Shown: positions 47,546 to 63,454, counted from the stretch's first letter. The stretch is DNA of 64,000 nucleotides from Oikopleura dioica (GCA_907165135.1 OU015567.1:310001-374000); one strand, 5' to 3'. A program made the numbers and translations. The notes: generated by a model from the sequence alone, not told the origin.

Positions 47546-48436
47546 TTATGCAAGAGTCGAGTCTTCTGTTGGGCATTTTCTTGTCGCTCCATAAATTGCA
47601 ACGAGCATGACCATTGTGATAAGCGTTATCAGTGCGATTAGAAAGTGGTTGATAAAGTTAAACTCGGCATCAAAAGTTGCTTCTTCTCCTTGTTCCCCAA
47701 CGAGTCCTGTCGCTGGATCAATTATCAAGTACTCAGCTTTGGAATAGCCAGTGAATCGAATGGGACCAAGGGAGACAACATTTTGACCATCGTAAGAAAC
47801 ATCTCTTGGAGATCGAGATTTTGCGCATTCGACAGCGCAGCTACCATCAAAGTCTTCGATGCAGACATTGACTTTGCAGTGCATGTAGACATTTTCAGAG
47901 TTTGTGAATCTAAGAAAATCATCATCAACGAAGAAAACTTTTGTCTTACTTGAAAACTCGGGATTGCCAGAGAACTTCGGATTCTTGTCCATTTTCGCGG
48001 ATCGTCATTTCGATTTGTGAGCCGATTGGAGTTGTGCAAAAATCGTCGTAGAACTCGAAACCATCCTTATCTTTCAAAAAGTTACGAAAATGGATTGCGT
48101 TTTATGGTTTTTACCGTTGATGTCTTCAGTAGGAGTTGCCCAGCAAGAGACAACTTGAAGGTTTGTCCCATTCATTGGTTCTTCGAGAACGACTTTCATG
48201 TTCAGAAAATTTCCTGTATCCAAAGTCGGGCTAAAAATTGTCTCACTCAAATCCTAAAGAAATTATTTTACCTTGAAAGATTGATCAAATCCGTGTAGTT
48301 TTCATCGGCATACAATTCAAAATCCACTCCAAACTTTCCAGAAGCATCGAGTGAATCGATGACGATCTTTTTCGCTGTATTTTGGCCTCTATAAAAGTGA
48401 ATGAAAGAAGACTTGGAGCGTTCTTACTTATAAAGA
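47546..48436 (-). pseudogene. 3' half of the ZP-domain gene (ZP-C, furin-like site, TM)
   Basis: SGKFGVDFELYADENY, LQVVSCWATPT, VYMHCKVNVCIEDFDGSCAVEC, RSPR, LGPIRF and a C-terminal TM. It joins in frame to the ZP-N copy at 63159 once the retroelement is removed. Confidence 0.85.
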
Positions 48437-48702
48437 GAATCTAGGACAAGGGATTAGCAGCCCGCTAGAAATAGAACGCGGCAGGAAGCCTAGTAACCAG
48501 AGGCAGGGATTCCCAGGAGGCAGCGGAAGGTGTCAAAGGCGCCCGAGAGCACCTGGTTTCGAGCGGGTGCCCCGGAATCACGCAGGTTCATTCGAAAGGT
48601 TCTTAGCCTACAGCTAAAACCTTAAACGAGGAATTTTAAATAGAGCCTTTTTCTCAGCAGAAGCATTACCAATAAGACTCCTAGCTGAATCAAAAAGACT
48701 CT
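48437..48702 (+). repeat. Terminal repeat A1
   Basis: Direct repeat of 62723-62988; begins with GAATC. Confidence 0.95.
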
Positions 48703-48819
48703 AGGTAGACCATCAATCGATGCTACCTGCTTATTTCACCTCTAAAAGTCCACGGACTATAAAATCATTCAGCCTCAGGCAATTACGCCTCGAAGGCTCT
48801 GGGATTCTTACTCAGTAAG

Positions 48820-48870
48820 CGGCCGCAGCGGCGCGCCGAGCCGAGCCAATCAGCTTCAGGCTTCTTAGAT
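48820..48870 (+). promoter_or_regulatory. Putative element promoter (GC-rich + CCAAT box)
   Basis: gcggccgcagcggcgcgccgagccgagCCAATcagcttca. The aatcagcttca motif recurs at 52650 near an inverted CCAAT (52591) and a TATA-like site. Confidence 0.4.
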
Positions 48871-49188
48871 TCAGAGAAACCCTCTTCTTAGAAATTCGGA
48901 ATTCCTGTTTCTTCCTCGAAGCCCTAGACTTGCTGACCCTCTCATTTAGACATGATCGAGGAGGCCTTCGTCAAGGCAGCGCTGGAATTCGGCCCCAAAT
49001 GGGGAGTGGCTTTGGACTCGGATCCAACACGCCCAATCGAGAACTCCCAAAGAAGACTCCAAACCCTCAATGAGGAAATCTCTAGGAAAGGATCTCTTCT
49101 CCTCAGAATCTTTTAGGAACGGGCTATCCCGAACACCTTCCAAATTTAGGATAGGTTTTGATCCATTTAAAGAAACACTCTGCTCTTA

Positions 49189-52143
49189 ATGAGTCAGATA
49201 AATTGGAGAAGAATTTCCCGCACTGCAATGGCGGAGCAAAAGATTGCCACGAGACTCGTCAGACTTTATGTCCCCTCGGATGCAAACGAGCCTCTCTCGA
49301 ATCACAGGCTGATGTTCGATCTGCAGACTCCCTCAAAAGCGAGATTCAATTTCGCAGAGCTCTCCTCGTGGTCCCAGATCATTTTCACGGCGCCATCAGG
49401 AAAAGAATCACTCTGGGTCGCTCACAGGAGCAACGAGCCTGGTTTCATACTCTCCATCATCGCAGACGAGATTGCAGAAGCAGAAACCGACCTCGCGGAT
49501 TCTTGGCAACTCGAATCAAAGCCATATCCATTTAAGCCAATGGAGAGCCCCACGAAGCTTCTAAAAGCAGACTCAGCGGGCACGACTGAGGACCCAAGCG
49601 TCAAGCTGGACGAATGCGAAACCATCTCCAATCTACTCGAAGCCCTGAAAATAGAAAAAGGACCAATAAGAATCGTGGCCAGGAGGCTAGACTCTCAGCG
49701 TAACTCGGAATCCCAAAGCGCGATGGAGAAAAGCAGACTCTTTCCGAACAACATCTCGGAGGAGCTCAACAAATGGGCGAAAATCAAGAGCCAAGACTGG
49801 TTCCGCGAGTGGGAAGACCTAGAAAATCAAGATATCCTGAACGAGGGATTCTGGCATTTCGTTTGCCTCCGAGTAATCGGTGAGAGCAAAATCAAGACCC
49901 AGGCGAATTACGAACGCCCAAGCTTCACGGACGACAATTGGCTCCGAAGACTCATAAAGAAAGGTCTTGAAACGATTTTCGACGCAATGCCAAGGTCAGA
50001 CGCTTTTATTACGCCAGAAGAACTACTGGACTCGCTCAAGATGCTGAAGTCTCTCCACAGCGACTGGCATGAAATTTGCCATCAGAAAAATGCCTGGCTA
50101 GAACTCAAAGCAAACGAGGACACCCAATGGGCGAACAAAAAACCGGCGAATATGAACGCATGGATCATCGACATAATCGGCGAATATGCATCGGAAGACT
50201 CACCCATTCCGAATCCGACTCCCTTAACAAAGATTCTCTCACCACTGCTGCTCCACCTGGTGCAAAAACAGCTCATCCAAGACTCAGTCATTGGTCAAGA
50301 CGGAAGCTGCAAGGAAATGCCCACCCAATGGCACGTGGACTGGAGCGAACTCAAGGATTCCCGGTCCCTCAAAAAGTGGCTGGAGTCAGCGGCGAAAAAA
50401 GTTAACCCGATTAATACCACGGTTAGAGTCAAAGAAGTTGGAAAAGGGGATTCCCACTGGATCCTGTGGATTCCTTACAAAGTCGTACCTCAAATATGGG
50501 TTTTCAACTACGGCGAGGACTCTGATTTTATCAAAGCGAAATCCCTCCTCTCCCTTGCAGCCCACCCAGCGCTCACGCCGTTAGAATCAGAGGCGCTCGA
50601 GAAGCTAGCCTCCAAACCTTGGACCACCCAAAACGTCAAAGAATGCATCTCGGCGTTCCAGAAGCCAACAAGAAACTTCTACGCCTCAGGAGCCTGCTTA
50701 GTCGGAGTCAACCGCCCCTTTCGAACTCAGAAGATCATCCTGGAAATCATCGCCAAGGTTGTAAGAGACACAAAAGCCCATTCTCACTTGCGCTCACTCG
50801 AGCATAACCTCGGAATCTTATCAACTGGCTGGAACTGGGCAAAAGGCAAAAGATTCAGCCCAAACAAGACTCTGGACAACTTCATCGACACCTGGATGCA
50901 GAAAAGAGAAGAAGTCACGGGAGTCACGAGACTCAGATTCCTTCGAGAACAACCAGAAAAGAGAGAAAGATCGTGCGAATGGCCAATGTGTGGGGAAGCG
51001 GAAGCGAGCACGACTTGGTGTAAAACACATCAAGGATTCCAAGAACTCAAAGAATCTCGCCAACCAGACTGCTCAGAGAAATGCCGAGTCGCAAACGGCT
51101 TCATACAAAAAGGACTCCCCCAGGGCACAAAAATGTCCATCGACAGCGAGGAATGGCAAGAAACCTTCTACAAACTCTCCGAATCTTTCAAAACGACTAT
51201 GCTAAAGGACGCTGGCGAAGACCTCATCCAGAGAATCCAGACCAGCGTAGTCGAAGGATTCGACTCTATCGTAAACGCTTGGAAATCCACGGCAATCCTT
51301 TTTCAGGGAGAAAACGACACAGCAGCGAACCTCAGCGAAAGTTTCCGGAAGTTCGGAAGAGTCTTAAAAAGACCACGATTCGAGAATCCGGGAGCAGCTG
51401 GAATAGTCATCTACCACGCAGGGCTAGAAAGATGCGGAGGAAAATTCGACGCTTTCGTAGTTGGAAACACCTCAACCAGAAAGAATCAACATCTCCCGAG
51501 ACTGGCGGATTCTATCTCCAAAAAATCTGGAGACAAATGGATGGAAGTAGCGAAAATTATCAGCGAACTCACATGCCAGAAAAACACAGTGCTGATTCTC
51601 CCTTCACAAAAAGACGCCAAAAAACTCAGAGAAGCTCTCGTCACCTGGTCGGCACCTTACGTTAAATTCGTCACCCAGGGCCCAACGAAGAATCTTCATC
51701 GAACACTCCAAGGGGACAAAAACCCAAGAATCTCGGGACTCTGGGAAATCTTCCAAATGGCCTGCGATGGGGACTACGAATCTGCATTTACCCCGTGTTG
51801 GGCACACCCCAGGGTGGCGGAAACGATGTTCAGATGCTGCAACGGCTTCGACGCTAAAAACCGAGCAGTCTCGAAAATAGACAAGCTCAAAATAAGAGCC
51901 AATCGAACAACCTGGGAGAATGTGACGGCCAAAACCCACATTCTAGCCCCAGACGCACCGTTCACGACCCACATCAGGGACATAATCCTCGACGGAATCA
52001 AGGCAGCGGAGAATCTTGACCTAGACCACGGAGAGGAAGCCAAAGTCGAGAATCTCTTCCCGAACGTCTGGTCTCAAGACCGCCAAAACATCGAAGAACG
52101 ATTCGCTCGTCTGAATGTCGCTGAAGCCACGGGAAGCGACTAG
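49189..52143 (+). CDS. Element ORF1, 984-aa intronless protein of unknown function
   Basis: Uninterrupted ORF inside the element. Contains a C-x4-C-x9-C-x2-H motif (CEWPMCGEAEASTTWCKTH). Confidence 0.85.
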   Translation: MSQINWRRISRTAMAEQKIATRLVRLYVPSDANEPLSNHRLMFDLQTPSKARFNFAELSSWSQIIFTAPSGKESLWVAHRSNEPGFILSIIADEIAEAETDLADSWQLESKPYPFKPMESPTKLLKADSAGTTEDPSVKLDECETISNLLEALKIEKGPIRIVARRLDSQRNSESQSAMEKSRLFPNNISEELNKWAKIKSQDWFREWEDLENQDILNEGFWHFVCLRVIGESKIKTQANYERPSFTDDNWLRRLIKKGLETIFDAMPRSDAFITPEELLDSLKMLKSLHSDWHEICHQKNAWLELKANEDTQWANKKPANMNAWIIDIIGEYASEDSPIPNPTPLTKILSPLLLHLVQKQLIQDSVIGQDGSCKEMPTQWHVDWSELKDSRSLKKWLESAAKKVNPINTTVRVKEVGKGDSHWILWIPYKVVPQIWVFNYGEDSDFIKAKSLLSLAAHPALTPLESEALEKLASKPWTTQNVKECISAFQKPTRNFYASGACLVGVNRPFRTQKIILEIIAKVVRDTKAHSHLRSLEHNLGILSTGWNWAKGKRFSPNKTLDNFIDTWMQKREEVTGVTRLRFLREQPEKRERSCEWPMCGEAEASTTWCKTHQGFQELKESRQPDCSEKCRVANGFIQKGLPQGTKMSIDSEEWQETFYKLSESFKTTMLKDAGEDLIQRIQTSVVEGFDSIVNAWKSTAILFQGENDTAANLSESFRKFGRVLKRPRFENPGAAGIVIYHAGLERCGGKFDAFVVGNTSTRKNQHLPRLADSISKKSGDKWMEVAKIISELTCQKNTVLILPSQKDAKKLREALVTWSAPYVKFVTQGPTKNLHRTLQGDKNPRISGLWEIFQMACDGDYESAFTPCWAHPRVAETMFRCCNGFDAKNRAVSKIDKLKIRANRTTWENVTAKTHILAPDAPFTTHIRDIILDGIKAAENLDLDHGEEAKVENLFPNVWSQDRQNIEERFARLNVAEATGSD

Positions 52144-52927
52144 AAAACGACTCCAAAAACTTCACCAAAATACAGTCAGGAAAAGGGCCCAAAAGAATCA
52201 GAAATTTCCAAAGAAAAAGTGAAAAAAAAGAGACTCGGAGCCCTCGAAAAGACTCAAAAATCGCCCAAAAACCCCCCTTTTCTGCCGCAAACAAGCTCAA
52301 GAATCTTCAACCTCAGGAAAAGACTCGCTAAATCTGTTAAATTCTCACTCAAAAAGAATCTACTTCACTTTCAATTAGCAAAAATCACAGAAAAAGAGTC
52401 TTACGAGAGAAAAACACTTTTTCCTCGAACTGCGCACCACCTCCACCACCAATCTCCACAAAAAAAGATCCGAAAGAGCACAAGAATCAGGAAATGGTCT
52501 CAAGAATCTAAAGATTTGAATCAAAATAGCATAAAATCCAAATTGGAGACCGTGGGAAAGTTGCAAAGTTGACTCACGAAATAGAGCGCGCTGATTGGCG
52601 GAGCACCAAAACGAGCCAGGATAAGCCAGGGCTCAAGCGAAATTGCCTAAATCAGCTTCATTTCTTCTCCAACAAAAAGAGAATCACCCAGAGCCCTTTA
52701 TAAAGAGAAAAACCACTGGATTCCGCTAGAATCAGACGCGTCAAAACCAGAGAATCAAAAAAAAAAGATTCTTCCCTTCCGGATCTTAATTTAGACTCTT
52801 TTTCTCGTGCTTCTTTTTAAAATTTCGCTCTTTCTTTTCAAATTTTCCTTGCGCTCCTCCAAACAAAACTAGCCAAAACCAAAATTTCGACTCTTTGCTA
52901 ACAAAGGCGTTTCTTCAGACTCTAGAA

Positions 52928-53939
52928 ATGACCCGAGACGCACAAGACGCACAGATTCACGACGCTGAAGGGCTCGAAAGACTCCGAGAGGAAGCCGGAA
53001 TCACCAAAAACCCGATCGACGAGCCAGACTACTGGAGGAAGATCAAATCGGCGATCAAGATGGACCCGGTGACTCAGTTCCCGCAGGAATCGAAGGGACG
53101 AATGCTCATTCGACTCAGACTGAAGATTGGAGACAGATTCAAAAATCTTCTCGAGCAAATGGTCGAAGGAATGGGTCAGAAAATAAAAAGAAAAAGAAAC
53201 TTAAAAAAAAAGAAAATTTTTTAAATATTGAAGAACAATTTTCATAACAGACTCTCAAGCCTTAGAATCGGCTTCTATTAAAATTCTGACCCTCATTAAA
53301 GGACTCACCGACCCCAACGCTCAGATGTCCCTCGATGGCTGGCAGAAATCCATCAACGACATCTCCCGAGTCCTCTCCGAGCTCGTGCGCGAAGAAAACC
53401 AGAAAATCGCCGAGGACGACCGAGCCCAGTCAGACCAGAGTCTCTTCTACGGCTGCCTCAACGCCGCCAAAGCCGCCATGGACGTCCACCCGCTCCTCAA
53501 CATCGTCTACATTGAGGAGTCACTCGTGATCCCGGAAGGAAGACTCCCAGCGTATCAAGAAAGAGTCTCAGCTCTCAAGGAAAAGGGTCAAATTAAAACT
53601 CTACACATTAAGTCGAGCCTTACAACTTTAAAAAAACCCTTTCAAAAGTCAAGAGCGGACTTTCTCCTCCGCCAAGATCGACTCCCCAAAGATGGCAAAG
53701 ACTCTCTGCGTAGCTGGAAGAAGCAAAGACGAAACGAGTACGTCAGCGATGGAGTCCCCAAAGACATTGCAGCTACGCTGGCAAGACGCGATTCAAGGAC
53801 CATCGGCTGGACGTCGCGACGAGACGGAACGACTCAGACTCACCCGGTGGAAGCGCAGCAGGCAAAATGCCAGGAATCCCAAACCACCCAAGGAAAGGCT
53901 GAAAGAATCTCAAAGAAAAAAGAGATTCATTTAAAATAA
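52928..53939 (+). CDS. Element accessory ORF2, unknown function, at least one intron (53175-53250)
   Basis: Removing GT..AG 53175-53250 joins ORFs 52895-53224 and 53325-53939 in frame. AATAAA signals follow at ~53935-53965. Confidence 0.7.
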
Positions 53940-54435
53940 AAATTGAAATTAAAACTCGAATAAAAATTAATAGAAAAAATGACGCACCATAAAACAAATC
54001 CACATAAGAAAAGGTGGATGAGCTCTTGGCCTTTCAATTTTGACTCACTTAGGCCAATTCAAAAAATAGAATCAGTCCTGATTTCAAAGAATCCAAAATT
54101 ATCAAAAATCCATTAAAAAGCCAATTCAAAACCCTCTTTCAGCCAAAAGATTCAGACTCGGCAGACTCGGCGACTCAGACGGAGAATCCAACTTCCTCAG
54201 TTTCGACTCAGACTCAGCAACCAGACCCTGCTCCAGCACAAGACTCGGCCAACAACGAAGAGGCAGACAGCGTCTCAGAACCAGATCTGTACGAAGACTC
54301 GTACAACGCCCGTTCAGGAAGGAGTCATAGAATTCCTAAAACATTTAAAGTCGAGCAAAAGTAACCACATAAAAAGAGAATCATATTAAAATTGTAACAA
54401 TCAAAAGACTCCACCCAAAAGACCCAACTCAACTC

Positions 54436-55167
54436 ATGCCTCCGGCCAGCCAAAATGCTCCAGTAGACTCCGAAGATGGCTTTTCTTCAGACGAAGAAAT
54501 CATGGAAGAATCCGGCGGAGAAGAAGATGAAGCTACAGTCGGATTCCCAGAGACTCAAGCCCAGAAAGAACAACAGGACTGGAGCAGACGCACAGACACA
54601 CTCTTCGAGTCAGCGGCGGAGCAGAAAGAAGCAGAAGAAAGACGAGTCAGAATCGCTGCCCAATGGAACGAGCCGCTCAAAGACATCAAGGAAGAATCCG
54701 AAAGCAACGCATCAGTCAGAATGGAGCAGAAGGAAAAAGCGGAAGCTGAAAGACGACTCCAGAAAGAAGAGTTCGAGAAGATTCAGAAGCTGAAGCAAGA
54801 ACAGGAGGACAAAGCGAGAGCCAGAGAAGCCATCAGACTCCGAATGCAGCGACAAGTGGATGAAAACACCAGAATCCGACGCGAATACCACGAGGAAATT
54901 CAGCGGAAGAAGGAGGAAGAAGAAGCTCAAAAAAGACGCCTCGCCCAAGACAAAGAAGCAGAAGAAAGACGCCGAGCAGCCATCAAGGCAGACGAAGAGA
55001 AAGTCCTCACCAAACCAGAAGTTGGAATCAGGCTCGTCGCAGAAACCGGCAGAAGAGGGAATCACTACTACCTGTCGAAGAAGGAAGCGAAGCTTATGAG
55101 CAGAATCTCAGGATCGGTTAGCACAGCAAAACTAGCTAAAAACTTCTTCAAACAAAAAAGAGTCTAA
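54436..55167 (+). CDS. Element accessory ORF3, acidic N-terminus + long E/K/R coiled coil (may splice to ORF4)
   Basis: 243-aa ORF; similar acidic coding-like sequence lies upstream at ~54140-54320. Confidence 0.65.
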   Translation: MPPASQNAPVDSEDGFSSDEEIMEESGGEEDEATVGFPETQAQKEQQDWSRRTDTLFESAAEQKEAEERRVRIAAQWNEPLKDIKEESESNASVRMEQKEKAEAERRLQKEEFEKIQKLKQEQEDKARAREAIRLRMQRQVDENTRIRREYHEEIQRKKEEEEAQKRRLAQDKEAEERRRAAIKADEEKVLTKPEVGIRLVAETGRRGNHYYLSKKEAKLMSRISGSVSTAKLAKNFFKQKRV

Positions 55168-55199
55168 AAGAACTGGGCTAACCAAAATAAGTCCGAGCC

Positions 55200-55699
55200 A
55201 TGCTCGATAATCGCCAAATCCAGAACTTCGAAGAAATCAGGCAAGCTTGGTTCAACAGCGAAGGACTCCTCAAATTCAAAGACTCCAAAAACCCGGGCCA
55301 CCGCCACTACAAGTACACCCTCCGATCCGGCTGGACCATCAAAGAAGGCACCGAAAACTGGAAGCTGGATCCAGTCGCCAGACTCAGCGCAGAGGAACGA
55401 CGAGTGGTCCATTACTTGGTGGAATTCCTCAACTACCAAGGAATCAAACGAAGATTCAAGGAGGCACTAGGTAAGAGCATATCTAAACATCGAAAATACA
55501 GAATCTAATTCATTTCTAGACACTGGACTCCTCAACCCGGCCAAGATGGACGCGATCCTCGTCTTTGCCTACAAGATCTGCGGCGGAAACCTGGTCCACT
55601 ACGTCCGATTCGTGTTCGTCCGACTCTTCAGACTCCACGACATCCCGATTCCCCCAGTGCACTCAGACGCCGCCCCAAAACCTCCACGCCACTACTAGA
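55200..55699 (+). CDS. Element accessory ORF4, unknown function, intron 55471-55519
   Basis: Removing the GTAAG..TTCTAG intron (49 bp) extends the ORF to ...EALDTGLLNPAKMDAILVFAYKICGG...PKPPRHY*. AATAAA lies near 55813. Confidence 0.65.
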
Positions 55700-56200
55700 A
55701 AAAGAAGAGAAGAAACTCTTACCAGACTCTTAGACTCATATTGCCTTTTTCCTCAAAACATTGAAACAGAACTTACCTCTTTCCATTCTCCAAATTCAAA
55801 AAGCTGTACATAATAAATAATTCGATCTCATCAGAAGATCTTCGCCTCTTTACTTCGAAGCATCACAAAATAGGAATCTAAACCGTAAATCCTCAAGCTA
55901 CAAGATAAAAAATCTTGTAATTAAAATATATGAAAACTCGCCAAATTAAAAGAGCCAAAAAATTCAGAATGGAGAGTCAAAATGCAGAGCCGCCAGAGGA
56001 ATATAAATTACCTTCAGAGTCAGGCCAGGGCAACAAAGAGTCACAAAAACGCCAGAATCCCCTAAACCAATGACTTTAAAAAAAAGAGCCCCTAAAAAGA
56101 AGACTCGAACGACGAAGCTCCACCTTCGGACCAACCGGAAAGCCCGCCAAACGAGAGCCAAATTGACTCGAAGAATCCTCAGCAAGGGCAAGGCACTAGC

Positions 56201-57412
56201 GTGAACCTGGAGAGACTCAAAGGGCTCGTTTGGGACATCCAAAACAGCCTCAACACAAACGCTTCCATCCCACCAAAAAGAATCTTATGCTACGGCGAGA
56301 CGCTGGATGACAAGATCAATAATCTAGCAACAGAAGCTGCCAAAATCATCTCCGAGTCCCAAGAGGCCTCAAAAATTATGAAAACGATCCTCCAAGAAGC
56401 CGAGCATGAGGGTCTCCAGGGAATCCAACTGCTAGACGCCTTCCAAACCATTGCCATAATCGCGCACAGCCCATCCATAGGAATCAACCGAAGACTAGCG
56501 TCCACAAACAAGGTGGAGCTAGAGACGATTCAAGACACGCTGGAACTGACAGTCAGACCTGTAGTGGAGAAGCTTATGAAGCAAGTCCACGCTTCTAGCG
56601 TCTACAATTCGGCGGAAATAACCTTCTGGGCCAAAATGATGGAGCCACTGGAAAGAGACTCAGTTTCAAAAGATGATCTTCGGAAGCTAGAAGAGGCCGC
56701 GGCTTGGATCTTGGGAAGGCTCTGGAATGAATCTGCAGAAGCCATCTTCAGAATGATCTTAGCGAGATGCAAGCCACCAGAAAACCTCAACTCTCGAGCA
56801 TCACCAAGAATGACGCTCATAGCTCACATTTGGAACATCAGATTCAAAAAGATTCTAGAGTTGAGCCCGGACAAAAGACACGCTTCCTTCGCGAACGAAA
56901 GACAACTCAGCATCTCCATCGCCAACTCAATATTTGGAGAAATCCTTTTCCAGATAACGAACACGCGATGCATCTTTCCAAGACTCCTATCAAGTGCAGC
57001 AAGATCAGCATGGACCCACCTTAACACGCTTTGCGGAGCATCGAATCCCATCAGTCTGACGCTCAAAGAGTTCTTAACGAACATTGACTCGAATCAAGAT
57101 TACACGGCCTGGGACGCAATCCGTACGCTGCGCAGAATCTGGCCACCGAGAGATTGCATCGCTGATGCTGAATATAGAGCCCTCAATCTCAACGACATCG
57201 ACAACCGCCTCGAAAGAGGACTCGAAGATCCATCCTCACTTTACGGCACCACATACGAGAAACTCTTCTGGAAAATCCCGATTCCGAGAAGCTATGAGTC
57301 CGCCCGCACAACCGCGGGATTCAAACGAAAGAGAGCAAACGAAGAAGACGAAGAGCTGGAAAACAATCGAATCAGAGATGCAGGCCATGGCGAGCAAAGG
57401 GATCTTCAATAA
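56201..57412 (+). CDS. Element ORF5, helical protein in the gag position (overlaps pol start); true start probably ~55969
   Basis: 403-aa ORF whose last 35 bp overlap the likely pol ATG (57378), like gag/pol overlaps in DIRS elements. Confidence 0.75.
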   Translation: MNLERLKGLVWDIQNSLNTNASIPPKRILCYGETLDDKINNLATEAAKIISESQEASKIMKTILQEAEHEGLQGIQLLDAFQTIAIIAHSPSIGINRRLASTNKVELETIQDTLELTVRPVVEKLMKQVHASSVYNSAEITFWAKMMEPLERDSVSKDDLRKLEEAAAWILGRLWNESAEAIFRMILARCKPPENLNSRASPRMTLIAHIWNIRFKKILELSPDKRHASFANERQLSISIANSIFGEILFQITNTRCIFPRLLSSAARSAWTHLNTLCGASNPISLTLKEFLTNIDSNQDYTAWDAIRTLRRIWPPRDCIADAEYRALNLNDIDNRLERGLEDPSSLYGTTYEKLFWKIPIPRSYESARTTAGFKRKRANEEDEELENNRIRDAGHGEQRDLQ

Positions 57413-59800
57413 ACTCAGATTCCCAATCATAAACCCAGTAAACATTCACAATGATTCAATCACCGGCCCAAAATCCTTACCTGAATGGAGAGTCTACGAG
57501 ACAGATCTGCTTCACAGAGTCATAAAAGTCCTAAATAACGAGATCAAGCCCGACTGGAGAGAACTGACGCTCAAAAAAGAATCCGATTTCATCGCCGGCC
57601 AATGGACCCACAACAAAGACAACTGGAGAGCCTTAATCCATCAGATGCCCGAGAAAGTAAAGCCTCTCATCTACCACTTTGTCCACGCCGGAGCAGACCT
57701 ATTTTTGAATCTCAAAAGAATACCGCCGAAGAAGCCAGTCAAATTCAAGCGAAAGGAACTGGTAACTATTTGGAAAAGAAACTCAGCCAACGCGGACACC
57801 CTTAGGAAGATGGACGGAAATTTCAAAACATGGTACAACCACAGACTTAGACTCTCAAAATTTGTGCCTCGACCATACGAAAAAATCGGCAAGCGATTCA
57901 AGACTCTCACAATCCCGAGTCAGGAAGCTGTAAGAGAAAGAAGCGACGAGATTGCCCAACAAATTACCGACTGGTGCGAAATGGGCTCAGTAACAAGAGT
58001 CACAGAAGCCAAAGGATGCTGGATCCGCGCGGGATTCGTTCTGGTTGACAAGCCAGGCAGGGAGACAAGAGTCTGCTGGAACGGTGGAGTTCTCAAACCG
58101 CTTCAACTATACACGTTCCCGTGTAAATTGGAAGGCATTGGAACAGCGATTCAGATGCTCAAAAGAGGGGATCTACTGTACAAATTCGACGATAAAAAAG
58201 GTAAAACAGCAGCAAAACTTCAGAACCAAAAACTCAAATCTAGGATTCCACCAGCTCCCGCTCAGCGAAGAGAGCAAGAAACTCGCCTGCTTCGAATGGG
58301 GAGGCCAATATTTCAGAAACAATATTCTAGCATTCGGAATCCCAGCCGCGCCCGGAATCTACCAACTCATGAATCTGTGTGGAGTCAATTTCCTGAGGAA
58401 AAACGGAATCAAAATCACGCTCTATTTGGACGACAGACTCTTGGCGGTTACTCCAGAATCTGAGGAAGAACGCCGCCAGCTGCTGTCGGGAGAAAAAACC
58501 AGCAAGGAAGTCTGGGCAACGGTAGCGACGCTAGTAGCTCTAGGTGGCTATGTTAACATCGCGAAAAGCACCTTCGAGCCTACCCAGAGAATAGAATTCC
58601 TGGGCTTCATTCTAGACACGGAAAACGAGACGGTAGAGATACCAATTCAAAGATGGTCAGCCCTAAAGAATCTCATGAAAGATGCCGAGGCAGAGGCAGA
58701 AATTCCGACGCGGACACTGGAAAGAATCAGAGGCACAATGGCAAGCATGGCGGAAGTCCTCCCGAACATGAGAATGCTCATCCGTCAAACAACAATCCTC
58801 ATCAGTGAAGCCATCAGGAATGAAAAAGAATCCTGTATTCTGACTCAAGAAGTCCGAGAGGAATGGAGACTTTGGAATCTTCTGGAAGAAAAAGGACTCA
58901 AGAGGCATTGGACCAAATTAAATCGACAAGAAACCGGTCTCATAATATACACAGACGCTTCTTCGCACGCAGGAGCCATCGTCATCGAGCACTGGAAGCT
59001 AGAAGAAAGATTCGCGTGGGAGCCGGACGTAGCAGACAAACACATCGGTATCAAAGAAGCCCTCGCGATCCAATACACACTCGAGTGGTACGGTCAGAAG
59101 CTTCAGAACAAGAGAGCGCTGTTCCTCTGCGACAACGACAGTGTGGTTCAAGGAGCGATAGCGGGTAGCAAAGACCCGGAAATGAATCGGATTCTAGTGA
59201 GAATCTGGACTCTGGCGCATCGCTTCAACATAGACATGAAGGTCGATTGGGTCAGCACAAAGAAGCAGCTGGCTGACGCTCCTTCCAGGGATTTGGACTC
59301 GAGGGAGCAAAAACTAACGGCAAATGGATTCGCTTATCTCCAATCTCACCTCCGGGATCCGCTCGACATCGACGTGGCAGCAACGGTAAGACTCAAACAG
59401 CGAAGCGGACTCGCAAATAAACTTCCATTCCGTTCAGCCACTCAACAATAAATGCAGAGACTTCATCGCACGCCGAGAGACGAAAGGAGCCTTTGGAAAA
59501 GACTTCCTAAGCTTCCCAATCCACGCACTTATCGGAAAAAAATTGTATGCGTTCCCGCCTCCGAAGATTTCTCACAAATACTACAACAGACTCACCGAAA
59601 TAGCAACGCCCTGGGCTCTGGTGGTGCCATGCTTTGAAGCCGAACCTGTAGTGGTAACACAGGCAAGACTCAAAGGCTACAGAATCTTTGACATACCGGC
59701 GGATTCCATCCTCACGCCCTCAAAAATAAAAACTGCTGAAGGCTACTGGAAAGTCGCGCTAAACATCTCAACCATAAAAATTATTGCTAATAGACTCTGA
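57378..59800 (+). CDS. pol: reverse transcriptase - RNase H - N6-adenine DNA methyltransferase-like domain; introns 58201-58243 and 59386-59437
   Basis: After splicing: RT KFDDKKGFHQLPL...LAFGIPAAP...LYLDDRLL; RH YTDAS...HIGIKEALAI...LCDN...WVSTKKQLADAPSR; MT IDVAATPLNNKC...DFLSF...LYAFPP...WALVVP. Confidence 0.93.
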
Positions 59801-59903
59801 AGCTCTGCAGCCTCTCTCTTAGACTCACCATTCATCCAATTCACGGAAAACACAAATCTGACTCTCAAACCCTCTGTTTTTAGACTCGGAATCAATTGAA
59901 AAA

Positions 59904-61211
59904 ATGGCGGAACAGACCAAAACCCTCTCCAAGCTTCTTTCTGACCACACGAAGCTCACGGAGCAGGAAGCGAAGACGCGGGCGGTCAGAGTCCAGATCA
60001 CCAAGGCAGCATTCTACGAGCATTCAAAGACTCAAGCTCAAACGGAAGAGGCTGATCGACTCATCGTGGAAATTGAGGACATCAGAAAAGACATGGCGAC
60101 TCACGATAAGCTCACCGACTCCCTCATTGTAAGTAATCTCCACCAAACGCAGAAAGAACTCCCTCTTATTACAGAAAGAGATCGCGGAACTCGAAGCCAA
60201 CCGCGACAAGAGTCTCGAGATCAAAAAACGAGAGCCCAACGCCAAAAAGCGATCGGAGGAGGAAAACAAATTTTATGACCGTTGGAATCCATCGGAAATA
60301 GAATCTAAACTCCGCCGCCTGATTGCCGACAAGATGGAGCGCTACAGCCTCAAGGGGTCCATGTTCGCCCAAATCAAAGCTCGAGAAACGAAAATCACCG
60401 AGCTCTCCCAAAACACGACCGAGTCAGCAGCGGTCTTCAAGGAAAAGGACCCGCTCACGGGTGTAGAATCCTATTTCATGGTAAGAATAAATAGTAAAAA
60501 GAAAAAGAAAAAAATCTTACATCCTAATTTTCAGACTCAAGTCGGCTCAACGAGCCTTCCACAAGATGAAGGAGACTCCCTCCGAGACATAAGCAAGGAA
60601 TTCCGAGCGTTCGTCACGGATGCCAAGACTCAACGGACCTTCAGACGAGAAAAGCTCCTGAAGTTGCTCGGAAACTATAAGAGAGCCATGACTCCCGAAT
60701 ACACCGAGCGGGCGATCATCGAAAGCGTCGTCGACGAACTGATTCGAATGCCGGACATGACCCGCAAAGACGCGCTTCTATCCCTCACGGTAAACCTACA
60801 ATTCAAAAAAAAACACACACGACTCATAATCCACTTTAGCCGCTTATGCGCCCAAACGTGCGCCACCAATTCGACAGAGCCATGACAATGAACACGACTC
60901 ATCCGACCTTCAAGAAGATGATCATTAACCCCTGCGATGGTTCAGAGGACTGGCGCACCGAAAAAGACTCTAAACCAGGCCGTGGGCGTCGAGGAGGACA
61001 CTCGAATGGCGGCCAAAGCAAGAAGCAGAAAACGGACCATCAAGGGGAAAATGCGAGCCCCAAATTCAACCCCGAAGGAAGCGGACATTCGGGAGGCCGA
61101 GGCCGAGGCCGCGGGCGAGGCCGAGGACGAGGCCGCGGGCGAGGCCGCGGCGGTGGAAGCAATCAAGGAGGAGACACTAAGAAGTTCCAAGACCAAGGCG
61201 GAGTCGAATAA
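59904..61211 (+). CDS. Element ORF7, coiled-coil protein with C-terminal RG/RGG tail (gag/nucleocapsid-like); introns 60129-60174, 60481-60534, 60790-60839
   Basis: GT..AG introns join ORFs 59904, 60334 and 60846 in frame. The C-terminus reads GRGRGRGRGRGRGRGRGGG. Confidence 0.8.
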
Positions 61212-61393
61212 TCCCAAAGACTCTCTTTAAGAATCAATCCACTTCTTAAGCGAAGAATAGCCCCTGGCAGTGCGCAGTTTTTCGCCTAGTTTCTCTCTTT
61301 CAAAACCACTGCCAATCTTTAAAAGCTTTTCACACTTAAAAACATTCAGGCCCTCTAAAAAAGCTCGAGCCCGAAAAGACTCAATTCAGATTC

Positions 61394-62562
61394 ATGACTT
61401 GGCTCGACTACAAGAATCTTCTGGAGCACTGGGAAGTGGCGGAAGCAATGTCTACCTTCAGCTACGACGAAGCCGAGACCGACGACGTGATTCAGCATTT
61501 TCTCGACAGGCTCCTCACCAGACCAATACTCAAGGCCTACGCTTACGAAAAAGGAATCACAACGATTCAAGACGTAATCGCGTCTCAAACGAAGAAGACT
61601 CTCACGGCCAAACAGAAAAGGAAGATCAAGACCTGGTGCGAGCACAGAGCTCGAGAATCAGCAGCCGAGGCACTCCAATACCCCAAGGTAAATCAATTCC
61701 GCTCCCCTAGGCGATAACCCTTTCCTTAAGCAAGCGGAAGTCGTCGACGAGCCCGAAGCGATTCAGTTGTGGGAAGAGCTTATGAAAACAAACAAGCCAA
61801 AGCCAAGAGAAGCAGCTATCGCCTTCTTCATTTGCTTCACCACGGGTTCCAGAATGAAGGAGGCCCTCAACCTCAGAATCGAAGATCGCGAAAGCGTCAA
61901 AGAAGACGGAAAAGAATTCTGGCGATTCCACATCCGATCCAGCAAGACGGACCCATTCTGCAAACGCATGGAGACTCTCACCATTCCAATGGAAATGAAG
62001 CACGGCGTCCCGCTAGCTCTCGAGCTCCGAGCACAAGTGAGAGACCGAGAATCAGGTAAAATTCGAATCCGACTTACCCTAAGCTAAATTTTTCGATAGG
62101 ACTCGTCCTCAAGACTCTCGAAGGTCACACCAGAATCGCCTCGGACTACTTAGCCCGCTATGGAGCCAAAGCAGGACTCTCTAAGAAGGTTTATAACTTA
62201 AAATCCTCACGTACCGTAAGAATCCAATTCAGGTTTCCGCACATTCAGGCAGAGTCAGTTTCTACATCGAAGGACGACGCTCTGGCCTCTCTCAACAAAC
62301 GCTCGCGCACACGCTCCGCTGGGCGCCAGGAAGCTCGATGCCGGACTACTACGAAAGATGCTGGCTTGAGTGCAGCAATTTGGGAGCGCCAGTCAGCGTC
62401 GCAAAATCAAGAGCCAGAAAGCGAAACGGAAGCGACAACGAAGACAACTCTCTTCAGGTAAAAACCAGCATGACAAGGGAGACTCCTTCATTTAAAAAGG
62501 TTTCAGATACCCCAAGAACCACAAGAAGCCAATCAAGAGCAAAAGAAACAGAAAACAACTGA
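61394..62562 (+). CDS. Tyrosine recombinase; introns 61688-61730, 62056-62099, 62189-62232 (possibly 62458-62499)
   Basis: The spliced protein holds the full catalytic set: TTGSRMKEAL (R), SSKTD (K), VSAHSGR (HxxR), LRWAPGSSMPDYY (W, Y). Confidence 0.92.
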
Positions 62563-62677
62563 AGCTTAGTCCACAGATGACGCTGTCAACATGAAAAAGA
62601 GTCTTTCCATCCTTTTTTTTCCTGCCAAATTAGAATCCTTAGACATCGATTGACGAGAATAACGAGAATGGTAGGGA

Positions 62678-62988
62678 GGGAATATTCCCATTACCATTGT
62701 TATTTGTGCGTGATTATAATACGAATCTAGGACAAGGGATTAGCAGCCCGCTAGAAATAGAACGCGGCAGGAAGCCTAGTAACCAGAGGCAGGGATTCCC
62801 AGGAGGCAGCGGAAGGTGTCAAAGGCGCCCGAGAGCACCTGGTTTCGAGCGGGTGCCCCGGAATCACGCAGGTTCATTCGAAAGGTTCTTAGCCTACAGC
62901 TAAAACCTAAAACGAGGAATTTTAAATAGAGCCTTTTTCTCAGCAGAAGCATTACCAATAAGACTCCTAGCTGAATCAAAAAGACTCT
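62678..62988 (+). repeat. Internal B1-A2 junction (circle-junction copy)
   Basis: B1 62678-62722 directly abuts A2 62723-62988 (...ttataatac|gaatctagg...). Confidence 0.92.
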
Positions 62989-63113
62989 CCCGCCCACCAT
63001 CCCTGAAATAAGCAGTACATGTAGGGTAAAACGAGCACACGCCCTACATACTGCCCAGTCCATTACCTTAGAAAGGCTCTTTCTCTACCACAGTATTGTA
63101 ATTGCGCGTGCTC

Positions 63114-63158
63114 GGGAATATTCCCATTACCATTGTTATTTGTGCGTGATTATAATAC
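63114..63158 (+). repeat. Terminal repeat B2
   Basis: Identical to B1: gggaatattcccattaccattgttatttgtgcgtgattataatac. Confidence 0.92.
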
Positions 63159-63454
63159 ACATCGGAACTATGAACCATCTGAAGCGGGTAGGTGCATTTC
63201 CACTCAAAAATCTTCTGCGTTCCAAAAGTACCGACTTCCAATCCAGCTGTGCTCGATCGATCGGGGAAGAAGTGAGTCACGTGGTTGGAGAAAACAGCAT
63301 GGGTCGCATTGGTGTTCAGGTTCGTCCCGCAGTTGAGAAAATCCGAAGTGTTTTCATCCCCAAGACACATTTTAAACGTCGTCGCGTCTTCATAAACATG
63401 GAGCTCGTTGCAGAGCTGGCTGAAGTGGAGACCCCACCATTTGTCCTCGTGCCA
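63159..63454 (-). pseudogene. Inverted duplicate of the ZP-N exon segment (43938-44230)
   Basis: 63162-63454 is the reverse complement of 43938-44230 (293 bp, no differences seen). Confidence 0.9.

Follow-up and report, generated by a model that had tools for sequence, protein, structure and literature searches.

A stretch of 64,000 nucleotides of the Oikopleura dioica genome (GCA_907165135.1 OU015567.1:310001-374000, here C5:310001-374000 and called the window) carries a complete retrotransposon that is saturated over its whole length with a short odd-length palindrome, GANTC. The element is a PAT-like (split-direct-repeat) tyrosine-recombinase retrotransposon of 14,722 bp at 48437..63158 on the plus strand, recognised by its repeat architecture, its motif counts and the drop of these counts in the flanks. 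The GANTC excess is specific and not compositional, and the motif goes with the element lineage rather than with the host or the base composition. Judging from sequence comparisons, the word also appears to be maintained by selection. The explanation favoured here, with a confidence that stops somewhat short of even, is that the extended form AGANTCT is a double-stranded DNA site of a two-fold symmetric, probably element-encoded and co-evolving putative reader, and that selection would keep the sites dense. The original prediction, which was made from the sequence of the window, had seen in these sites the targets of an N6-adenine methyltransferase (MT) encoded by the element itself, which would mark the element DNA with N6-methyladenine (6mA).

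In the element, 280 GANTC sites were counted in 14,722 bp (19 per kb, or one per 53 bp), and in the host DNA of the window 233 sites in 48,436 bp (4-5 per kb). No part of the element, whether coding or non-coding, fell outside 13-25 sites per kb, and this applies to the terminal repeats and to the stretches between open reading frames (ORFs) as well. The edges are sharp, with 4.5 sites per kb in the 2-kb left flank and 3.6 per kb in the right flank. The hand counts on which the original prediction was built were closely reproduced: the six sampled parts of the element gave 7, 9, 13, 7, 5 and 7 sites (8, 9, 13, 8, 5 and 7 had been claimed), and the three sampled parts of host DNA gave 2, 0 and 2, as claimed. 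Its statements that the excess extends over coding and non-coding parts, that the element starts with GAATC, that repeat A holds six sites (both copies do) and that GACTC and GAATC outnumber GAGTC were borne out as well.

The excess survived the Markov and codon-shuffled null models. Relative to a mononucleotide expectation, the observed/expected ratio (O/E) of GANTC in the element was 5.4. It was 2.80 (z 17.6) in a first-order Markov simulation, 2.51 (z 18.6) under a second-order model and 1.43 (z 6.0) under a third-order model, which already includes the tetramers of the GANTC word. Host DNA was near expectation, with an O/E of 0.99-1.13. Among the 256 patterns of the form XYNZW, GANTC ranked first in the element and the runner-up had an O/E of 1.95. 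The control pentamers GANTG|CANTC, a comparison already suggested with the original prediction, were not enriched (O/E 0.89), and TCNGA stood at 1.11. When synonymous codons were shuffled with protein and codon usage kept, GANTC still had an O/E of 1.65-2.2 and a z of 4.2-8.7 in five ORFs of two families. In ORF1, which encodes 984 amino acids, the values were 1.65 and 6.4, and its sites were distributed over the three codon phases as 19/24/14.

A codon or dipeptide effect was ruled out as the cause by this shuffle together with the occurrence of sites in all phases. Three-base periodicity was likewise ruled out, as GA-to-TC spacings of 0-12 were compared and an excess was found at k=1 only. 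A longer repeat unit was excluded because the flanks of the sites are near background and no 9-mer was found more than six times. The flank preference is confined to the adjoining bases: A precedes GANTC in 54% of the sites, T tends to follow, T in the preceding position is depleted to 8%, and the further bases around the site deviate little from background. Each of the four possible central bases is in excess (2.3-4.0-fold), with counts of 102 for GACTC, 92 for GAATC and 34 for GAGTC. Among palindromes with three-base half-sites, the top word in the element was AGANTCT (51 sites, O/E 5.6, z 13.9).

Ten further places in the genome were identified by a DNA search. The copies at 99, 97, 83 and 76% identity carry 16-20 GANTC sites per kb (O/E 2.6-3.1) with GANTC at rank 1, so that in the comparison with other family members all copies at least 76% identical share the excess. 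The density falls sharply at the ends of the family copies. In families A and F, AGANTCT had an O/E of 5.6-6.0 and a z of 14. A different state was found in families I and J, which are 69% identical to the element. They carry GANTC at just 1.3-1.6-fold, and their top word is GCNGC (O/E 2.4-2.5), which in family J is extended to AGCNGCT (37 sites, O/E 6.0, z 12.4). This variant of the GCNGC families is AGANTCT with one base changed symmetrically in each half-site. The relatives with a GANTC excess of 1.3-1.6-fold have the same GC content (0.45-0.48) and the same A-T skew (+0.25 to +0.31). Since sister families of the same composition have a different word, composition and strand bias are not the cause. 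In family H (70% identity), GANTC, GANGC, GCNTC and GCNGC are all enriched 1.5-2.3-fold and both heptamers are present. A reverse transcriptase (RT) search located at least 150 places in the genome.

The spacings adjoining the enriched one seem to be avoided. In the element of the window, GATC had an O/E of 0.54 and GANNTC of 0.63. Over this element and all family copies (L001-L020), the values were 0.4-0.6 for GATC and 0.6-0.8 for GANNTC, despite the GANTC excess. In the GCNGC families, GCGC is depleted in turn (O/E 0.4-0.6).

Two independent sequences from outside this genome also carry the sister motif. An element in the Norwegian reference strain (L031, GCA_000209555.1), with 62% protein identity, has 10-21 GCNGC sites per kb over 15 kb, and the adjoining host genes have 1-5 per kb. 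Its 226 sites correspond to an O/E of 2.62 (first-order) and a z of 11.8 (second-order). As for GANTC, the excess is found at k=1 only, A precedes the site in 71%, and the heptamer AGCNGCT reaches an O/E of 7.0. Simple (AGC)n repeats were ruled out as the source of GCNGC, as peaks are absent at these repeats' spacings of k=4 and k=7. In a 3.6-kb marine metagenome contig (L030) with an MT domain of 49% identity, AGCNGCT had an O/E of 11.2.

Another element-wide palindrome was found in a more distant relative, a metagenomic contig of 21.7 kb (L033, ENA ERZ27294030 k119_1617320) with 35% pol identity. Here, TCCNNNGGA tops all 3+3 patterns, with 36 dispersed sites, an O/E of 6.7 and a z of 13.3, and it is the sole such palindrome among the distant relatives. 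The same contig holds 22 TCCNNNNGGA sites, each in a unique context.

Evidence for selection on the sites comes from comparisons between families. Between families A and F, identity is 70% over 12 kb and the GANTC density is equal. Among about 220 alignable GANTC sites, 102 are common to both and about 120 are private in each. The shared fraction amounts to 46-47%, compared with a mean of 28% over XYNZW patterns (rank 2-4 of 113). The GANTC sites of family J are kept in A at 46%, compared with a mean of 15% (rank 1 of 105), and of the GCNGC sites of J only 8% persist in A (rank 95 of 105). At places with a GANTC site in A but not in J, the sequence of J mostly reads GCNTC or GANGC. These changes are A/C and T/G transversions, not the transitions favoured by ordinary mutation. 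Retention above that of other words, together with the replacement of lost sites, points to selection for the GANTC word and for its density. In a tree of the RT-RNase H region, the GANTC families group together in a single clade (support 97/96), and the GCNGC word is found in two further subclades, I+J and L031+L030. GCNGC was probably the ancestral word and GANTC derived once, a polarity that we infer from a tree that is unrooted within the clade.

The features of the element, given in window coordinates, are as follows.

48437..63158, plus strand: complete PAT-like tyrosine-recombinase retrotransposon
48437..48702, plus strand: repeat A1, the 5' terminal repeat, starting with GAATCT and holding six GANTC sites
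49189..52143, plus strand: ORF1, 984 amino acids, an orphan with 57 GANTC sites in all three codon phases
57645..58202, plus strand: pol exon with the N-terminal part of the RT, located by tblastn of gene model P0011 (from the 99% copy) and followed by a tiny intron
58243..59385 (start approximate), plus strand: pol exon that covers the RT core (YLDD), RNase H and the first part of the MT-like domain, from Pfam and the exon map
59438..59797, plus strand: pol exon that encodes the Dam-like MT domain core, from the LYAFPPP motif IV (codons 59543-59563) and AlphaFold fold matches
61340..62559, plus strand: tyrosine recombinase region spread over several frames and exons, from a weak Phage_integrase match
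62678..62722, plus strand: repeat B1, directly 5' of A2, junction read
62723..62988, plus strand: repeat A2, with six GANTC sites
63114..63158, plus strand: repeat B2, the 3' copy of B, junction read

The repeats have the split order known from PAT and DIRS elements, in which A1 opens the element and B1-A2-B2 closes it. As direct repeats, A extends over 275 nt (48428-48702 and 62714-62988, 99% identical) and B over 50 nt (62678-62727 and 63114-63163, 96% identical). Pfam recognised RVT_1 in pol above the cut-off (E 8.7e-09) and RT_RNaseH weakly, and the RT-RNase H region aligns and trees with DIRS-like pols. According to gene models of near-identical copies, pol is broken up by tiny introns at about 58203-58242 and 59386-59437. 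The Phage_integrase match in the window is weak (61692-62084, E 0.029), and the tyrosine recombinase is supported by PF00589 on the orthologous genes of the relatives L031 and L032. An integrase or endonuclease was not found in the element. ORF1 had no Pfam match and no atlas match, and further ORFs besides ORF1, pol and the recombinase are present without an assigned function. A is abundant and T scarce on the sense strand (A-T skew about +0.3), where the dinucleotides TA (O/E 0.49) and GT (O/E 0.57) are depleted. As a consequence, each of the three forward frames runs on without a stop for hundreds of codons, and the length of an ORF is not in itself a gene marker in this element. Three poly(A) RNA-seq runs labelled O. 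dioica gave zero reads on 56001-62000, the presence of this strain in the runs not being shown.

The GANTC-type families start on the motif at their first base, which reads GAATCT in A and C and AGAATCT in F and G. The motif was located at the element start at the following positions.

2111 in L016
2004 in L017
48437 in the window
2225 in L013

A role of the first five bases as a recombination core was considered, but the GCNGC-type families I and J begin with TTGTGGAATAT, not with their own word. Between the MT-like domain and the recombinase lies an ORF with a run of arginine-glycine (RG) dipeptides (60840-61208 in the window). This run is conserved in families F, H and J and might form a tail that binds nucleic acids.

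The original prediction had assigned an MT-like domain with a YAFPP motif to the C-terminus of pol. The motif is present (codons 59543-59563), and the fold part of the claim held, whereas sequence profiles and the catalytic motif did not support it. No match at E<=1 was obtained with Pfam, including the N6/N4 methylase and the Dam (PF05869) and MethyltransfD12 (PF02086) models. A profile of six MT-like domains gave no methyltransferase match among PDB sequences, and an exhaustive search of 1.8 billion representative proteins with the domain returned just ten matches. In the AlphaFold model, the core has a pLDDT (predicted local distance difference test) of 80-95 and is predicted to adopt the class I S-adenosylmethionine (SAM)-dependent methyltransferase fold. 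The top structural neighbours in VIA-align are all adenine-N6 methyltransferases (Z of 8.7 for DIMT1, 8.6 for METTL5, 8.5 for T4 Dam, 8.4 for ErmC', 8.3 for E. coli Dam and 7.5 for DpnM), and the best Foldseek match is PCIF1 (E 2e-3). Such middling Z values for a predicted model support the fold, not the function.

In amino-methyltransferases, motif IV reads [D/N/S]-P-P-[Y/F/W]. The window has F-P-P-P (codons 59552-59563), and all clade relatives have F-P-P-[P/K/R/Q/N], so that two residues are lacking, the one that holds the amino group of the target and the aromatic one for stacking. Other DIRS pols that were retrieved read YAFPPF. The position of the SAM loop (motif I, FxGxG) reads VDVAAT, with no glycine and in a structural register not checked residue by residue. 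As judged from the model, the domain is of the Dam-like (alpha) kind, in agreement with what has been published on DIRS elements, and not of the CcrM/M.HinfI kind: Pfam N6_N4_Mtase gave no match, there is no DPPY, and the neighbours are alpha-class Dam and rRNA adenine methyltransferases. In a preprint, DIRS-type domains expressed in dam- E. coli yielded no 6mA, nearly all DAM domains read NPP, the first of the catalytic subdomains was absent along with a portion of the recognition domain, and animals were described as having no background 6mA system (10.64898/2026.05.21.726589).

An odd-length perfect palindrome with a free centre would be the footprint of a two-fold symmetric reader on double-stranded DNA. 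As the word tracks the element phylogeny within one host genome, with three motif states, such a reader is most likely element-encoded and co-evolved. The sites could tag the DNA of the element, be it a circular cDNA intermediate or an integrated copy, as 'self', and this tag could serve coating, recombination licensing, or the control of chromatin or transcription. The Dam-like domain would be the only element-encoded candidate with a fold known to read such short sites. Because its catalytic motif is degenerate, it would be expected, if at all, to act as a binding or base-flipping module, in the manner of METTL14, and not as a writer of 6mA. Its role as candidate reader is a step that we infer from the predicted structure. 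In a wider version, which is possible but decidedly tentative, the clade as a whole would write a lineage-specific 7-bp self tag, AGCNGCT ancestrally and AGANTCT after the switch, and would encode a co-evolving putative reader, plausibly the Dam-like domain, so that each family would know its own DNA only.

Several observations weigh against an element-encoded reader. Pfam and atlas searches recognised no DNA-binding domain in ORF1 and the other ORFs. A second element of the Norwegian strain (L032, 60% identity) has an intact MT-like domain and no dominant palindrome, which speaks against a strict coupling of palindrome saturation to this domain, and no dominant palindrome was found in the distant relatives L035, L037, L038 and L039. 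Family H, taken as a 'relaxed intermediate', is known from one 7.7-kb copy and is partly explained by a codon effect. GANGC is biased to phase 0, and a codon effect is accepted in part for this word. There is also strand asymmetry: central C exceeds G, GANGC exceeds GCNTC in families A and F, and A is tolerated after the site. It can be explained by avoidance of GT on the sense strand and by Glu/Asp-Ala codons, with some room left for a role in RNA.

The alternatives differ in where they place the reader, or deny one. Palindromes of this kind might be bound by proteins of the host, for example chromatin proteins or transcription factors that act as dimers, with different lineages recruiting different ones for transcription, nuclear retention or anti-silencing. 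Odd palindromes of 7 bp are typical of dimeric eukaryotic factors, and the AP-1/GCN4 site TGA(C/G)TCA includes GACTC. AGCNGCT is mildly over-represented in host DNA (O/E 2.5) at unique dispersed places, and Pfam and atlas searches revealed no DNA-binding domain encoded by the element. However, GANTC is at expectation in host DNA (O/E 0.99-1.0), the T that an AP-1 half-site needs before the site is the depleted base, and a single genome holds three motif states that match the tree of the elements. One site per 53 bp over 14.7 kb, coding parts included, is also far above a usual enhancer. A host reader is considered unlikely. A function in RNA is rather improbable. The motif could be the site of a packaging, export or splicing factor, a site of N6-methyladenosine (m6A) at AGACU, which fits DRACH, or a means of multivalent palindromic RNA-RNA pairing that clusters genomic RNAs of the same family. 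This would agree with the strand asymmetry (GACTC 102 and GAGTC 34, A at -1 in 54%, GANGC above GCNTC), with the introns, which require that unspliced genomic RNA be kept, and with the established need of homotypic RNA kissing for palindromes. Yet all four central bases are enriched and GAAUC and GAUUC lie outside DRACH, an RNA duplex of odd palindromes would have a mismatch at its centre, and the GT depletion of the sense strand can explain the preference for C over G. Moreover, both motif types have a perfectly palindromic core and flanks that are largely mirror images, neither of which a single-strand motif needs.

The proposal that the C-terminal domain of pol is an active GANTC-specific N6-adenine methyltransferase, and that sites were amassed for 6mA self-marking, is judged quite improbable. 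Its premise of a real and selected enrichment stood, and a Dam-like, adenine-N6 methyltransferase fold is predicted. The second motif position is occupied by A or C. These are the two that carry an exocyclic amino group, and a switch between adenine-N6 (GANTC) and cytosine-N4 methylation (GCNGC) would therefore be conceivable in principle, and the mark would be unique in an animal without background 6mA (10.64898/2026.05.21.726589). Self-marking is disfavoured because of the degenerate motif IV (FPPP), the missing Pfam and PDB sequence matches, the negative data from dam- E. coli (10.64898/2026.05.21.726589), the GCNGC sisters, which have no fixed adenine, and L032, which has the domain without the enrichment. 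The sequence VDVAAT at the expected place of the SAM loop and the Dam rather than CcrM/HinfI kind of domain add to this. Self-marking is therefore possible but disfavoured, while a self-tagging motif for a symmetric factor is well supported. Least probable, and largely refuted, is the view that the excess arose neutrally, from composition, codon usage, amino-acid content, or context-dependent mutation or editing. It can draw on the enrichment of the dinucleotides TC (1.59) and GA (1.25) themselves, on a codon-shuffled expectation of about 11.7 per kb in ORF1, which is above the host level, and on the third-order model, which soaks up much of the signal. Against it stand z values of 17-18 in the di- and trinucleotide models and of 4-9 in the codon shuffle, the enrichment of one spacing with depletion of the adjoining ones, the equal density in non-coding parts, the sister families of identical composition with another palindrome and no GANTC excess, and the retention of sites above average.

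Compared with known systems, the element shares with the PAT-like and DIRS1-like elements that carry an MT domain the order RT, RNase H, MT-like domain and tyrosine recombinase, and also the split direct repeats A1...B1-A2-B2 (Goodwin and Poulter; PMC3266345; 10.64898/2026.05.21.726589). Described elements are smaller than 6 kb, whereas this one has 14.7 kb with extra ORFs and introns, and motif IV is NPP in nearly all domains of the preprint, YAFPPF in other DIRS pols and FPP[P/K/R/Q/N] in this clade. DIRS1-like elements have already been listed for Oikopleura dioica. No paper on a saturating palindrome in DIRS/PAT elements was found in the library searched, nor one that connects GANTC with retrotransposons or treats 6mA in Oikopleura. 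The bacterial enzymes CcrM and M.HinfI recognise the same word, GANTC. However, they are of the beta class with DPPY, and the element has no sequence match to them and fold neighbours of the Dam, KsgA and METTL5 kind. In addition, bacterial GANTC sites are not saturating, and the sister motif GCNGC is not an adenine site. With T4 Dam and E. coli Dam, the predicted model has the class I fold in common (Z 8.5 and 8.3, 109-110 residues at 2.9-3.5 A). Dam, T4 Dam and DpnM also share the surroundings of motif IV (hydrophobic-Tyr-x-X-Pro-Pro), but in the element their catalytic Asp/Asn is replaced by Phe and Pro/Lys/Arg/Gln stand in place of the next aromatic. No glycine-rich SAM loop was recognised in the element's domain, the target-recognition domain is mostly absent, and GATC, the word of these enzymes, is depleted in the element. 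In METTL14, which is catalytically dead, a methyltransferase fold is likewise kept under selection with a degenerate motif IV (EPPL there, FPPP here). It acts on RNA as partner of an active subunit, whereas no active partner is evident in this element, for which nucleic-acid binding is proposed.

Self-tagging by short words is known from bacteria, in the DNA uptake sequences of Neisseria and Haemophilus, the GATC clusters at oriC and at the pac site of phage P1. There, selection keeps a short word far above chance because a cognate reader tells 'own' DNA apart, and the element would resemble these systems in its working, not by membership. The bacterial sites are non-palindromic or clustered, and the reader here is putative only. 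We know of no case of self-tagging in a eukaryotic retroelement.

Other local word excesses were noted in the course of the analysis. In host DNA, 42 of 62 GCTNAGC sites lie in a single 10-kb locus (L026, G000 C4:1000001-1010000). Several of them have surroundings of the GCTCAGCTCAGCT type and point to a local simple repeat. A 22-bp minisatellite at L029 7527-8169 (G000 C5:1007527-1008169) with the unit ATCCTGAGTCAGGGCCTGCAGC in about 23-29 copies contains an AP-1-like TGAGTCA palindrome per unit, resulting in a local GANTC spike that is unrelated to the retroelement. A further GANTC spike in control DNA (L023) was a mild local excess with no relation to the element. In the distant relative L035, the top word is the non-palindromic ACGGAG (42 sites, O/E 7.4), and the marine metagenome contigs L035/L036 have 12 dispersed sites of the non-palindromic CGTNACGGAG. 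These word excesses are possibly a splice or regulatory signal. The L031 element lies about 3.5 kb from a gene with a zona-pellucida domain (L031 18534-20238), with a BTB/Kelch gene in between.

The MT-like domain of DIRS/PAT elements has been without an explained function since its description about 25 years ago, and the sole functional tests, by expression in E. coli, were negative. In the present case, the DNA of the element itself appears to show which sequence matters, and it offers AGANTCT and AGCNGCT as family-matched substrates. If the reader is element-encoded, the system would be a eukaryotic counterpart of bacterial self-DNA tagging and a clean natural case of a protein and hundreds of DNA sites switching specificity together. 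Should the reader instead be a host factor, the case would show how host proteins are recruited massively by retroelements whose genome is very compact and has little methylated cytosine.

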